Of a stretch of 64,000 nucleotides of DNA, positions 13,439 through 24,111 are shown piece by piece; position 1 is the first letter of the stretch; every line of letters starts with the position of its first letter. Under the pieces are notes generated by a model, which was not told the origin of the DNA, did no database searches, and saw only the letters and a list, made by a program, of their open reading frames with translations. The stretch covers positions 124,001 through 188,000 of the IMG/VR virus record IMGVR_UViG_3300044712_001937; one strand, written 5' to 3'. The translations under genes and the position numbers were made by a program.

Positions 13439-13526
13439 GTCGGGTTGCGTGAGTGGTCGAAACGGGGGTTCTGCAAAAGCTCTATTCCGAAAGGTACACA
13501 TTGGTTCAAATCCAATACCCGACTCA
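13439..13526 (+). tRNA. tRNA-Cys(GCA), long variable arm
   Basis: gtcgggt/acccgac acceptor, ct-gca-aa loop, U73. Confidence 0.85.
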
Positions 13527-13530
13527 ATAT

Positions 13531-13620
13531 TCTTGGGTTGCTTTAGTTGGTCGAAAAGTCCAGACTGTTAATCTGGTGAGATTTATCTCCATCATAGGTT
13601 CGAATCCTATCCCAAGAGCA
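13531..13620 (+). tRNA. tRNA-Asn(GTT), long variable arm
   Basis: tcttggg/cccaaga, ccaga-ctgttaa-tctgg, V-arm gagat-tt-atctc. Confidence 0.85.
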
Positions 13621-14317: not shown

Positions 14318-14402
14318 AGTGACGTGGATGAATGGTTTAGTCACCAGTCTGATACACTGGATTCTTAGGAATAATATGGGTTCGAATCCCATCGTCACTA
14401 CA
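14318..14402 (+). tRNA. tRNA-Ile(GAT), long variable arm
   Basis: agtgacg/cgtcact; ccagt-ctgatac-actgg; V-arm attc-ttag-gaat. Confidence 0.85.
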
Positions 14403-20462: not shown

Positions 20463-21176
20463 ATGGAAAAATGGAATGAAAATTCGATAAATTTATTACT
20501 TAAATATTTTAATGAAAATAAATCATATGAAGAAATAGCATTATTATTAAATCGAACATATTCTTCAATAAAAAATAAATTAAATAAACTTGGGTATAAA
20601 TTTAGAGATGTTAATCCTGCAATAATTTCTTATAAATGTGAAAATTGTGGAAATGAATTTAATGATAAAACTTCTGTTGAACGAAGATTTTGTTCAAATT
20701 CATGCGCAGCAAAAATTAATAATAAATTAAGGCATAAAATAAGTGATAAAAAATGTTTAAATTGTAATAAAATATTACATTCACATCAAAATAAATATTG
20801 TTCAAATAATTGTTGTACTGAATATCATTGGAAACAAACAATAACTAAAATCGAAAATGGCGATACATCATTTAATGAAAGAATATATAAAAAATATTTA
20901 ATTCATAAACATGGAAACAAATGTATGAAATGTGGTTGGAATGAAATTAATCCTGTAACTAAATTAGTTCCAATACAACTTGAACATAAAGATGGAAATT
21001 CTGATAACCATAATTTAAATAATTTAGAATTATTATGTCCTAATTGTCATTCACTAACTCCAACATTTGGTGCATTAAATAAAGGAAATGGACGTGATGC
21101 ATTAAAAAAGAAAAAATTAATATTCAAAGAAATAAAGTGTGATAATACATGGCAAAGGTCTACCCCGTCACACTAA
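20463..21176 (+). CDS. HNH endonuclease with Zn-finger repeats
   Basis: CENCG..FCSNSC; CMKCG...LEHKDGN..N...LLCPNCH. Confidence 0.88.
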   Translation: MEKWNENSINLLLKYFNENKSYEEIALLLNRTYSSIKNKLNKLGYKFRDVNPAIISYKCENCGNEFNDKTSVERRFCSNSCAAKINNKLRHKISDKKCLNCNKILHSHQNKYCSNNCCTEYHWKQTITKIENGDTSFNERIYKKYLIHKHGNKCMKCGWNEINPVTKLVPIQLEHKDGNSDNHNLNNLELLCPNCHSLTPTFGALNKGNGRDALKKKKLIFKEIKCDNTWQRSTPSH

Positions 21177-21179
21177 AAT

Positions 21180-22068
21180 AAATAACACAGAGGATTCATC
21201 GCTGTAGCAATACAGAGGAAGTTCAACACATCTCCGCAAAAAGTGGGAGGCTCAACGTTAATCGGAGTCGTTAATACCACTGAGGATGCAAGCCATACAG
21301 ATTTAGACGGTGTGCGGGTCTATGATAATCGGGTTGGTGCTTAGATAAATGATGAATTTAAGTTCTTTGATTTTTTATTTCATTATTTATTTTTTATAGT
21401 ATTTATATTTATAATTGAATATTATGAAAAATAAAATTTATTATGTGTATCAATTAATTTCTTCAAATGATGAAATTTTTTACATTGGAAAAGGTTCTGG
21501 TAATAGAATGTATCAGCATGTTAGTATTGCTATGGGTAAATCAATTAGTAGAACAAAAAATCTTAAACTATATAATAAAATAAAGAAAATTATTGATAGT
21601 GGTGGATTTATTAAATGTGAAATTATTTTTAAAAGTGAAAATGAAAATGATTGTTTTAATGAAGAAATAAGACTTATAGAAAAAATAGGTCTTATTAATT
21701 TATGTAATTTAACTATTGGTGGTGAAGGTACTTCGGGATATAAATTATCTGAAGAAACTAAATTAAAAATGTCTTTAGCTAAAAAAGATAAAAAAAGAGA
21801 AAATATAAGTAAAATTCATAAAGAAAATTTATTAAAAAATCCTCAAATTTTTAAAATTGGTCATGATGGTTATTGGAATGGTAAAACATTATCTGAAGAA
21901 ACTAAATTAAAAATGTCTTTAGCTAAAAAAGGTCGTAAATTTTCAAAAGAACATAAAGAAAAAATATCGCAATCATTAAAAGGACGAGAACTTTCAGAAA
22001 CACATAAAAATAATATTAAAAAATCAAAGACTTATTAAAACAGAAAGTTGACTACGCTCATGTTATTT
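21180..22068 (+). ncRNA. rnpB: Minimal RNase P RNA interrupted by a homing-endonuclease insert
   Basis: P1 aaataaca/tgttattt; P2 attcatc/gatgaat; P3 ctgta-gcaa-tacag; GAGGAAGUUCAAC pairing with AACAGAAA-GUUGACU (P4 with bulged U); tagataaat before the P2 3' strand. Confidence 0.85.
21424..22038 (+). CDS. GIY-YIG homing endonuclease with NUMOD3 repeats, inside rnpB
   Basis: YYVYQL...FYIGKGSGNR...NLTIGGEG; LSEETKLKMS twice. Confidence 0.88.
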   Translation: MKNKIYYVYQLISSNDEIFYIGKGSGNRMYQHVSIAMGKSISRTKNLKLYNKIKKIIDSGGFIKCEIIFKSENENDCFNEEIRLIEKIGLINLCNLTIGGEGTSGYKLSEETKLKMSLAKKDKKRENISKIHKENLLKNPQIFKIGHDGYWNGKTLSEETKLKMSLAKKGRKFSKEHKEKISQSLKGRELSETHKNNIKKSKTY

Positions 22069-22104
22069 ATTTTTATATATTTGTAGAAACTAAAAATTCC
22101 CTAC

Positions 22105-22377
22105 ATGAAGAAAATAATTTCTGTAAATGAAGAATATGACTATTATAATGGAAAGGTTGTGGCTTTTAAAGAAGACGATTCTATTTACATATATGCTTGC
22201 TATCATTATAGAGCATCAGAATATGGATTTTTCGATATATGTAATGATAAATCTCCACGTTATTTAGCTTATACAATAAATTCAATAAGACATGCATTAG
22301 AATGTCATGGTAATATATATGAATTTGATTCATTTAATGAATTCATAGAAAAAGCAAATGAAATATTTAATAATTAA
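22105..22377 (+). CDS. Hypothetical protein
   Basis: ORF after TATATTTG. Confidence 0.6.
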   Translation: MKKIISVNEEYDYYNGKVVAFKEDDSIYIYACYHYRASEYGFFDICNDKSPRYLAYTINSIRHALECHGNIYEFDSFNEFIEKANEIFNN

Positions 22378-24035: not shown

Positions 24036-24111
24036 GGCTCTATAGCTCAATTGGTCAGAGTGACAGTCTCTAAAACTGGAGGTTATGGGTTCGAACCCCA
24101 TTAGAGCCACA
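24036..24111 (+). tRNA. Amber suppressor tRNA (anticodon CTA)
   Basis: ggctcta/tagagcc; cagt-ct-cta-aa-actg; canonical D and T arms; A73. Confidence 0.9.

Follow-up and report, generated by a model that had tools for sequence, protein, structure and literature searches.

The question raised by this locus is whether a bacteriophage can encode an RNase P-type RNA of its own and how such an RNA might tolerate an endonuclease gene in its midst. The locus is part of a window of 64,000 nucleotides (nt), the whole stretch of DNA analysed here, which comprises bases 124001-188000 of the complete 364,702-bp phage genome IMGVR_UViG_3300044712_001937, a genome of 26% G+C with direct terminal repeats. 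The window contains one structured RNA gene in two halves, separated by an insert of 678 nt with an endonuclease open reading frame (ORF) inside; all parts of the gene and of its insert are located on the plus strand. Judged from the sequence, this is probably a miniature phage RNA of the RNase P type that carries an endonuclease cassette at the site of helix P19 and is predicted to be still working on precursor tRNAs (pre-tRNAs). The assignment of the gene to the RNase P type is supported by homology and comparison with relatives.

The original prediction had described helices P1, P2 and P3, a P4 with a bulged U and, without the insert, an RNA of about 210 nt with a strongly reduced specificity domain, a description that was borne out in all its parts. 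The 5' segment (21180-21358) is RNase P-like, with covarying helices, and a covariance model built from 19 minimal, insert-free members of the family only (R1) matched 21176-21392 with 132.7 bits (E=2.8e-33). The 3' segment (22037-22068) is the same as the 3' end of an insert-free allele, L197, except in P1. P1 pairs 21180-21187 with 22061-22068 and 21190-21192 with 22057-22059, P2 pairs 21193-21200 with 21351-21358, and P3 (21202-21215) is a five-pair hairpin with a GCAA loop. GAGGAA and the 5' strand of P4, AGUUCAAC, follow at 21215-21227 with U21223 bulged; the 3' strand of P4, GUUGACU (22047-22053), lies within ACAGAAAGUUGACUA (22040-22054), which represents J19/4 and CR-V and fits the universal CR-V pattern. 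Between the strands of P4 are located P5 (21229-21232/21285-21288), P7 (21243-21246/21277-21280), GCAAGCC followed by P15 (21292-21295/21335-21338), P16/17 (21300-21308/21318-21330), the L15 GGGU (21331-21334) and AGAUAAAU (21343-21350), which fits CR-IV. The catalytic domain is bacterial-like without P18, and the specificity domain is limited to about 50 nt between the strands of P5, namely P7 and one hairpin. Characters of RNase P RNA thus occur together: a bulged-U helix P4 flanked by GAGGAA(A) (CR-I) and ACAGAA (CR-V), a P1-P2-P3 arrangement with P2 crossing P4 and with compensatory changes in P1 and P3, and J5/15, P15, an L15 GGU for the tRNA 3' end and CR-IV (AGNNNNAU). All 49 invariant positions of the family are kept in the window RNA; in the other interrupted alleles, changes at invariant positions are mostly compensatory P15 pairs. 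The R1 search revealed a single copy of the gene in the 364.7-kb genome.

The nature of the interruption became evident from L197, which is about 97 % identical to the window RNA and has the same P4. L197 reads GATGAGAT directly followed by AAAACAGAAAG; the window reads GATGAATT, then 21359-22036, then AAAACAGAAAG. About 678 nt with the endonuclease gene have therefore been inserted where the 3' strand of P2 passes into the linker to P4, in agreement with the insert of about 680 nt claimed before. Further relatives were obtained with a conserved 757-aa protein that led to 29 loci of related jumbo phages; BLAST with the 5' segment detected homologs in eleven of them, all with AGATAAAT, 19 nt and then the ACA-AA motif, a spacing that amounts to about 700 nt in the window. 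A search with the 19-mer GGTTGGTGCNTAGATAAAT returned 14 viral and 117 metagenome loci. About 95 of the 117 are true members and represent 66-76 distinct sequences of 200-330 nt. The 19-mer also matched an unrelated protein gene (...QCGWCIDKYGLRWQ...) on some 20 metagenome and 8 genome contigs, which were discarded. An exact search of viral contigs with the 14-mer AGAGGAAGTTCAAC gave 117 loci, all of them chance matches in coding sequence. The neighbouring DUF6794 protein led to two loci with the RNA in neither, and BLAST of the region against GenBank phages gave no match. Among 185,579 species genomes the RNA was present on only two contigs (L325, L329), both in metagenome-assembled genomes of Patescibacteria/Paceibacterota. 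One of them is a phage-sized scaffold of 362,763 bp, equal in length to the jumbo-phage contig L178 of IMG/VR; the two contigs are probably mis-binned phage DNA and were rejected as a host assignment.

Covariation was assessed on an alignment of 57 distinct sequences. RNAalifold returned 44 pairs, 32 of them with compensatory changes, in P1, the base of P3, P4, P5, P7, P15, P16 and P17. P2 and P4 cannot be shown jointly by this program because the helices cross in a pseudoknot. Pairs counted by script were formed in 398 of 398 cells for P2, with up to five pair types per position, and in 452 of 456 cells for P4, also with up to five pair types and with three to five types at five positions. 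GCAAGCC, GGGU-UGGU and AGAUAAAU do not vary in the alignment. The lack of variation in the P15 pairs is an effect of the search pattern, which had fixed them; alleles detected independently of the pattern show compensating changes in these pairs. Conserved in the family are GAGGAA-N-UUC, GCAAGCC, the L15 GGGU, AGAUAAAU and ACANAANNNNGNNUA. The size of the specificity domain ranges between about 50 and about 170 nt; the larger relatives have GNRA hairpins in this domain that no model matched to CR-II/CR-III. One or two extra GNRA-capped hairpins, e.g. CUCC-GAAA-GGAG or CAUAUC-GUAA-GAUAUG, were also observed between the 3' strand of P15 and AGAUAAAUGA, the position of the bacterial P18, in L312, L314 (there 5' of the endonuclease gene) and L323.

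Rfam is silent on the interrupted gene because of the insert and the divergence of the family, and its identity was therefore judged by comparison with the relatives. Insert-free relatives were compared by cmscan with all 4227 Rfam families. RNaseP_arch (RF00373) matched end to end, at the correct place and on the correct strand, in 4 of 5 loci and then in 19 of 20, in total 23 of 25, with E-values of 1.5e-8 to 0.19 for all and of 1.5e-8 to 6e-3 for the 19 of the larger set. A search of the joined sequence with RNase P models, as proposed in the original prediction, was run on L197 as natural proxy: RF00373 matched over the full model with 39.5 bits (E=5e-8), below the gathering score of 84. 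A 301-nt stretch of L197 gave 31.4 bits (E=1.4e-7) in an alignment that spans from P1 to P1. The covariation of P4 represents independent support, because P4 is outside the nested structure of the Rfam model. In the opposite direction, R1 applied to five true rnpB loci had its best match in the real rnpB of a Bacteroidota genome (11.3 bits, E=0.027), which shares a stretch AGAUAAAUGAU...UAAAACAGAA; this may be taken as weak reciprocal support and a hint about the origin, no more.

With bacterial and archaeal type A RNase P RNAs (RF00010, RF00373; clan CL00002) the phage RNA has in common the P1-P2-P3 arrangement, the P2/P4 pseudoknot, the bulged-U P4, P5, P7, P15 with the L15 GGU, and CR-I, CR-IV and CR-V; its J18/2-P2-J2/4 stretch closely resembles a Bacteroidota rnpB. 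Unlike type A, it is virus-encoded and has only 200-330 nt instead of 350-400 nt, most members are without P18, and the specificity domain of the window allele is reduced to P7 and one hairpin. A likeness to archaeal type T had been claimed, the minimal RNase P RNA of Thermoproteaceae (Lai et al. 2010, cited in PMC7191817). The claim is correct for size only, about 200 nt with a specificity domain mostly lost beside a catalytic domain kept. It does not extend to the architecture: P5, P7, a small hairpin and a bacterial-like L15 GGU are retained, unlike in type T, and the best model is archaeal type A, RF00373 being the best clan member on every relative and the type T model RF02357 on none. 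In contrast to type T with its archaeal proteins, the phage RNA presumably works with the single protein subunit of a bacterial host.

The setting of the gene is consistent with a function in tRNA maturation. The phage genome has 49 tRNA genes and one tmRNA gene, nearly all on the plus strand between 104 and 148 kb, and none of the tRNA genes encodes the 3' CCA. The RNA gene is located at the downstream end of the tRNA array, on the same strand, and most loci of the family are within tRNA arrays. A gene for RnpA was not found in the phage genome, thus the protein of the host would be needed.

The insert carries a gene for a GIY-YIG/NUMOD3 homing endonuclease of 204 aa (21424-22038), as had been recognized before. 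Pfam revealed a GIY-YIG domain (PF22945, E=1.1e-12) and NUMOD3 (PF07460, E=3.9e-12), the PHROGs assignment was phrog_314, homing endonuclease, and the protein aligns with the GIY-YIG structures 9u75/9u7u in the motifs YVY...YIGKG..R..H. A GIY-YIG domain combined with a DNA-binding module is characteristic of homing endonucleases, and so is the presence or absence of the cassette at a fixed J2/4 (P19) site, with seven alleles that have it and L197 and more than 70 others that do not. Several dozen close homologs share about 45-78 % identity with the endonuclease. Eight of these, with 59-71 % identity, were looked up, and all eight, together with that of L308, are in or directly after a member of the RNA family. 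Seven distinct alleles carry the cassette at the P19 site (window, L308, L312, L314, L320, L321, L322); in L316, L318 and L323 it is located just 3' of the RNA gene or in its 3' end. On these comparisons, the endonuclease lineage is evidently specialised on the phage RNA gene. The marine L318/L319 have the endonuclease gene inside the 3' end of the RNA gene (about 1100-1860), and the last 17 nt (GGTAAGCTCAGTCTCAC) are duplicated, which results in two alternative 3' ends.

Inside the loop, 26 nt 5' of the endonuclease ATG and 3' of the 5' arm of the closing stalk, a promoter-like gene-start motif, AGTATTTAT, was located at 21398-21406; homologous cassettes have the motif too. Of its 65 copies in the genome, 33 precede the ATG of an ORF of 80 aa or more by 20-36 nt, compared with about 1 % expected. 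The motif probably serves as a promoter in the transcription programme of the phage itself. A scan of sigma-70 promoters and terminators gave nothing above chance.

Why might the RNA survive such an insert? P19 lies between P2 and J2/4, stacks on P2, is variable in length and has been lost many times (PMC12974513). The insert is situated between the 3' strand of P2 and the linker AAAACAGAA that leads into P4, and the stop codon of the ORF overlaps the first A's of this conserved linker. The proposed placement in P19 agrees with the insert-free alleles: most family members have no helix at this site, but L234, L282 and L289 form a 5-bp hairpin at the exact point of insertion, with a stem sequence resembling the base of the window stalk. 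Two marine alleles have a longer hairpin at the P19 site, 8 bp in L318 (by reading) and similar in L323. The long closing stem, with the last codons of the ORF as its 3' arm, was likewise recovered: in the minimum-energy fold, 21359-21377, the 5' arm of an extended P19, pairs with 22017-22034. The start of the cassette thus pairs with the last codons of its ORF, and the insert is therefore predicted to be the oversized hairpin loop of P19. The stalk has 18 bp and forms together with P1 in the minimum-energy fold of the whole 889 nt. Fourteen of 16 computed pairs have a probability of at least 0.95; the weaker pairs are 21359-22034 (0.82) and 21363-22030 (0.49), beside a bulged U. A second tier (21436-21451/21997-22011) is also predicted in the fold. 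With -16.9 kcal/mol, the duplex is matched in strength by 5 of 20,000 pairs of windows with the same spacing elsewhere in the AT-rich genome.

The stalk is a property of all cassettes at the P19 site. In each of them the 5' untranslated region pairs with the last codons; the energies lie between -19 and -47 kcal/mol, and the stalks of L321 and L322 extend to about 27 bp. The three free-standing cassettes reach only -9 to -17 kcal/mol. Between alleles, differences in the two arms of the stalk compensate each other (UAA/UUA, CAC/GUG, AAA/UUU). Although the cases are few, this agrees with the prediction of a selection for insulating the host RNA.

We propose the following course of events. A site-specific GIY-YIG cassette has inserted at helix P19, between the 3' strand of P2 and AAAACAGAA, where it is looped out as an oversized P19, so that P1, P2 and P4 can still form across the insert. 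Together with host RnpA, the RNA would still act as an RNase P and remove the 5' leaders from pre-tRNAs of the phage itself. The endonuclease would be transcribed mainly from AGTATTTAT inside the loop, with transcription running on through the 3' segment of the RNA. Messengers started in the loop are without the 5' arm of the stalk, and translation of the last codons would therefore not be blocked; transcripts that start upstream would carry both arms. The endonuclease presumably cuts insert-free alleles near the highly conserved AGAUAAAUGA...AAAACAGAA DNA and spreads in this way. For the mature RNA two options may be considered: the insert stays in place as an enormous P19, or the stalk of 18-27 bp is cleaved by the RNase III of the host, which would leave a two-piece ribozyme held by P1, P4 and a stub of the stalk. 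A long duplex closes the insert, as in intervening sequences (IVS) excised by RNase III. A more far-reaching version envisages a large new viral mini-RNase P family in jumbo phages with big tRNA arrays, in which some genes are split by the endonuclease and the enzyme is assembled from two RNAs, about 190 nt from the 5' side and about 45 nt from the 3' side. The shorter RNA would be co-transcribed with, or cut from, the endonuclease mRNA, the cassette having its own promoter. We regard this version as tentative and rather doubtful, though conceivable.

Several results weigh against a functional RNase P RNA of the phage. An Rfam search of the 64-kb window at gathering thresholds gave no RNase P match, 21100-22150 had zero matches to all Rfam families up to an E-value of 10, and RF00010 and RF00011 did not match anywhere in the whole phage genome. 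The family members score 17-41 bits (best 41.3) with RF00373, far from the gathering score; by Rfam's gathering rule the family is not a member of RNase P. R1, run genome-wide on five bacterial genomes, did not find rnpB. The T-loop-reading specificity domain is nearly absent in the window allele. Seven records with a completeness rating of 90 % or more were searched, namely six close relatives and an unrelated contig of 536 kb, and only two of them have the RNA, which makes it accessory and dispensable for the clade. Among the sequencing runs searched, the interrupted allele was met only in DNA runs, and a joint skipping the insert was seen in none. On the positive side, a wastewater RNA-seq run contained a 201-nt contig at a depth of 35 that covers just the RNA of an insert-free relative, corresponding to 21168-21353 of an allele of about 92 % similarity and then continuing with AAAACAAGAAGUUGAC, the insert-free form. 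This suggests a discrete small RNA; in principle, the contig could stem from contaminating DNA.

The low model scores, together with a specificity domain that shrinks from about 170 nt to almost nothing in the window allele, might indicate an RNA derived from RNase P that no longer processes tRNAs, serving as a decoy that titrates host RnpA or tRNAs, or as a ribozyme or scaffold for another substrate. A precedent is the camelpox RNase P-like RNA, which is viral and had no activity in vitro (PMC3001073). All checkable elements of the catalytic core, however, are conserved and covary (J3/4, the bulged U of P4, J5/15, the L15 GGU, J18/2, J2/4), and the gene resides within tRNA arrays at most loci, thus we consider a loss of tRNA processing unlikely. 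In comparison with the camelpox RNA, with which it shares its virus-encoded nature and the resemblance to RNase P RNA, the phage family is distinguished from that weakly similar, inactive molecule by full conservation of the core, strong covariation and the linkage to tRNA arrays.

A second explanation holds that a once functional gene was inactivated by the insertion, that its halves are a recent pseudogene and that the phage relies on the RNase P of its host. The RNA is not essential in the clade, as the two of seven complete records demonstrate, homing endonucleases spread regardless of the harm to a dispensable target, and the restriction of the interrupted allele to DNA runs would be in line with a silent gene. 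Against this, the invariant positions are intact without exception, and seven diverged alleles, with endonucleases now 59-71 % identical, maintain the arrangement. All seven keep the complementarity of P1, P2 and P4 across the insert and have a long closing stalk, which is weaker in the free-standing cassettes, and the gene has no second copy in the genome. A pseudogene is accordingly an improbable reading too. An insert that is a self-splicing or enzyme-excised intron, with ligation regenerating the contiguous 210-nt RNA, is very improbable and was rejected: GIY-YIG genes are typical passengers of phage group I introns and the closing stalk resembles archaeal rRNA introns, but the search of 21100-22150 detected no group I or II core, the roughly 65 AT-rich nt outside the ORF could not accommodate an intron core, the stalk shows one bulge of 1 nt instead of a bulge-helix-bulge motif, and related cassettes also stand free beside the RNA gene.

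The preferred reading of an RNase P-type RNA with a tolerated cassette places the locus among several known systems. The free-standing GIY-YIG Seg endonucleases of T-even phages, e.g. SegB in the tRNA gene cluster (PMC13096335), are similar in the GIY-YIG domain, an own promoter (predicted here), the location in a phage tRNA region and the spread via endonuclease-free alleles (presumed here), and three relatives of the window cassette are free-standing beside the RNA gene. Unlike the Seg genes, the window cassette is inside a helix loop of a structural RNA gene, with a closing stalk that is partly its own coding sequence. In bacterial 23S rRNA, IVS are removed by RNase III, and the pieces stay together without ligation. 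The phage insert likewise is an extra segment in a peripheral helix of a structured RNA, closed by a long duplex; in contrast to the 23S rRNA case, this segment interrupts a ribozyme, is 678 nt long and carries a mobile nuclease gene, and the arrangement is here known from DNA and a predicted fold. Group I introns have endonuclease ORFs looped out from peripheral helices, e.g. I-TevI in the td intron of T4. Common to both are an ORF in the loop of a catalytic RNA, an ORF end overlapping structural sequence and an own late-type promoter, a promoter-like motif in our case. Unlike the td intron, the phage host RNA is not an intron and is not removed, and an activity in trans is at stake.

A second endonuclease gene is located next to the RNA gene. 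An HNH endonuclease ORF (20463-21176, plus strand; phrog_1271, E=7.6e-24) abuts the 5' end of the RNA gene and is outside the RNA. The L185/L186 allele has an HNH ORF within the loop of the P16/P17 hairpin (L186, reverse strand, 300-1000), flanked by a copy of GGTGTCGGTT on each side. With HNH ORFs beside and inside it in addition to the GIY-YIG cassette, the RNA gene looks like a hot spot of homing endonucleases. Immediately 5' of the RNA gene, a conserved hairpin was observed at 21137-21172, with a stem GUGUGA/UCACAC and a loop that contains CAUGGCAAAGGUCUACCCC. It occurs in many alleles with covarying stems (GUGUGG/CCACAC, GUGAUG/CAUCAC, CGUGG/CCACG, GUGCAAG/CUUGCAC) and is regarded as a nucleic-acid element because the reading frame is not conserved.

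The translation genes of the phage have peculiarities of their own. For many amino acids the phage has a tRNA gene of normal length, about 73 nt, and in addition a longer one of 84-89 nt whose variable arm is long. In the window, long-arm tRNAs are located at 13439-13525, 13531-13619 and 14318-14401, and the long form is present even for the class I amino acids Cys, Asn and Ile; elsewhere in the genome, judged by tRNA length, it occurs also for Gln, Glu, Val, Trp and Lys. ARAGORN indicated no introns in the three long-arm tRNAs inspected. A tRNA with CUA anticodon, an amber suppressor labelled Pyl by ARAGORN, is situated at 24036-24110 and matches the Rfam tRNA model with 70 bits; it may point to read-through or recoding of TAG in part of the phage programme. 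The tmRNA gene is outside the window, at genome positions 111992-112351 (G000), and its tag peptide ends with ...AELAIAA.

The phage RNA family, with more than 70 distinct members near tRNA genes, seems to be large and undescribed. A report of a phage-encoded RNase P RNA was not found in the literature, subscription journals being outside the coverage, and the only viral precedent found was the camelpox RNA; apart from this look-alike, the literature found describes RNase P RNA solely from cells and organelles. With its current thresholds, Rfam misses the entire phage family, which represents a series of bacterial-type RNase P variants of 200-330 nt with graded specificity domains. The interrupted alleles are a natural experiment in tolerance, with an RNA of the catalytic type carrying a coding cassette of 0.7 kb in P19, and the cassette appears to be selected to insulate its host RNA by a stalk that consists partly of its own codons. 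If true, the two-piece enzyme would be without a natural precedent among RNase P RNAs, and the cassette would be the first homing endonuclease housed directly in a trans-acting ribozyme, and not in an intron or intein. For the phages, the family would extend the takeover of translation from tRNAs and tmRNA to the maturation of tRNAs.

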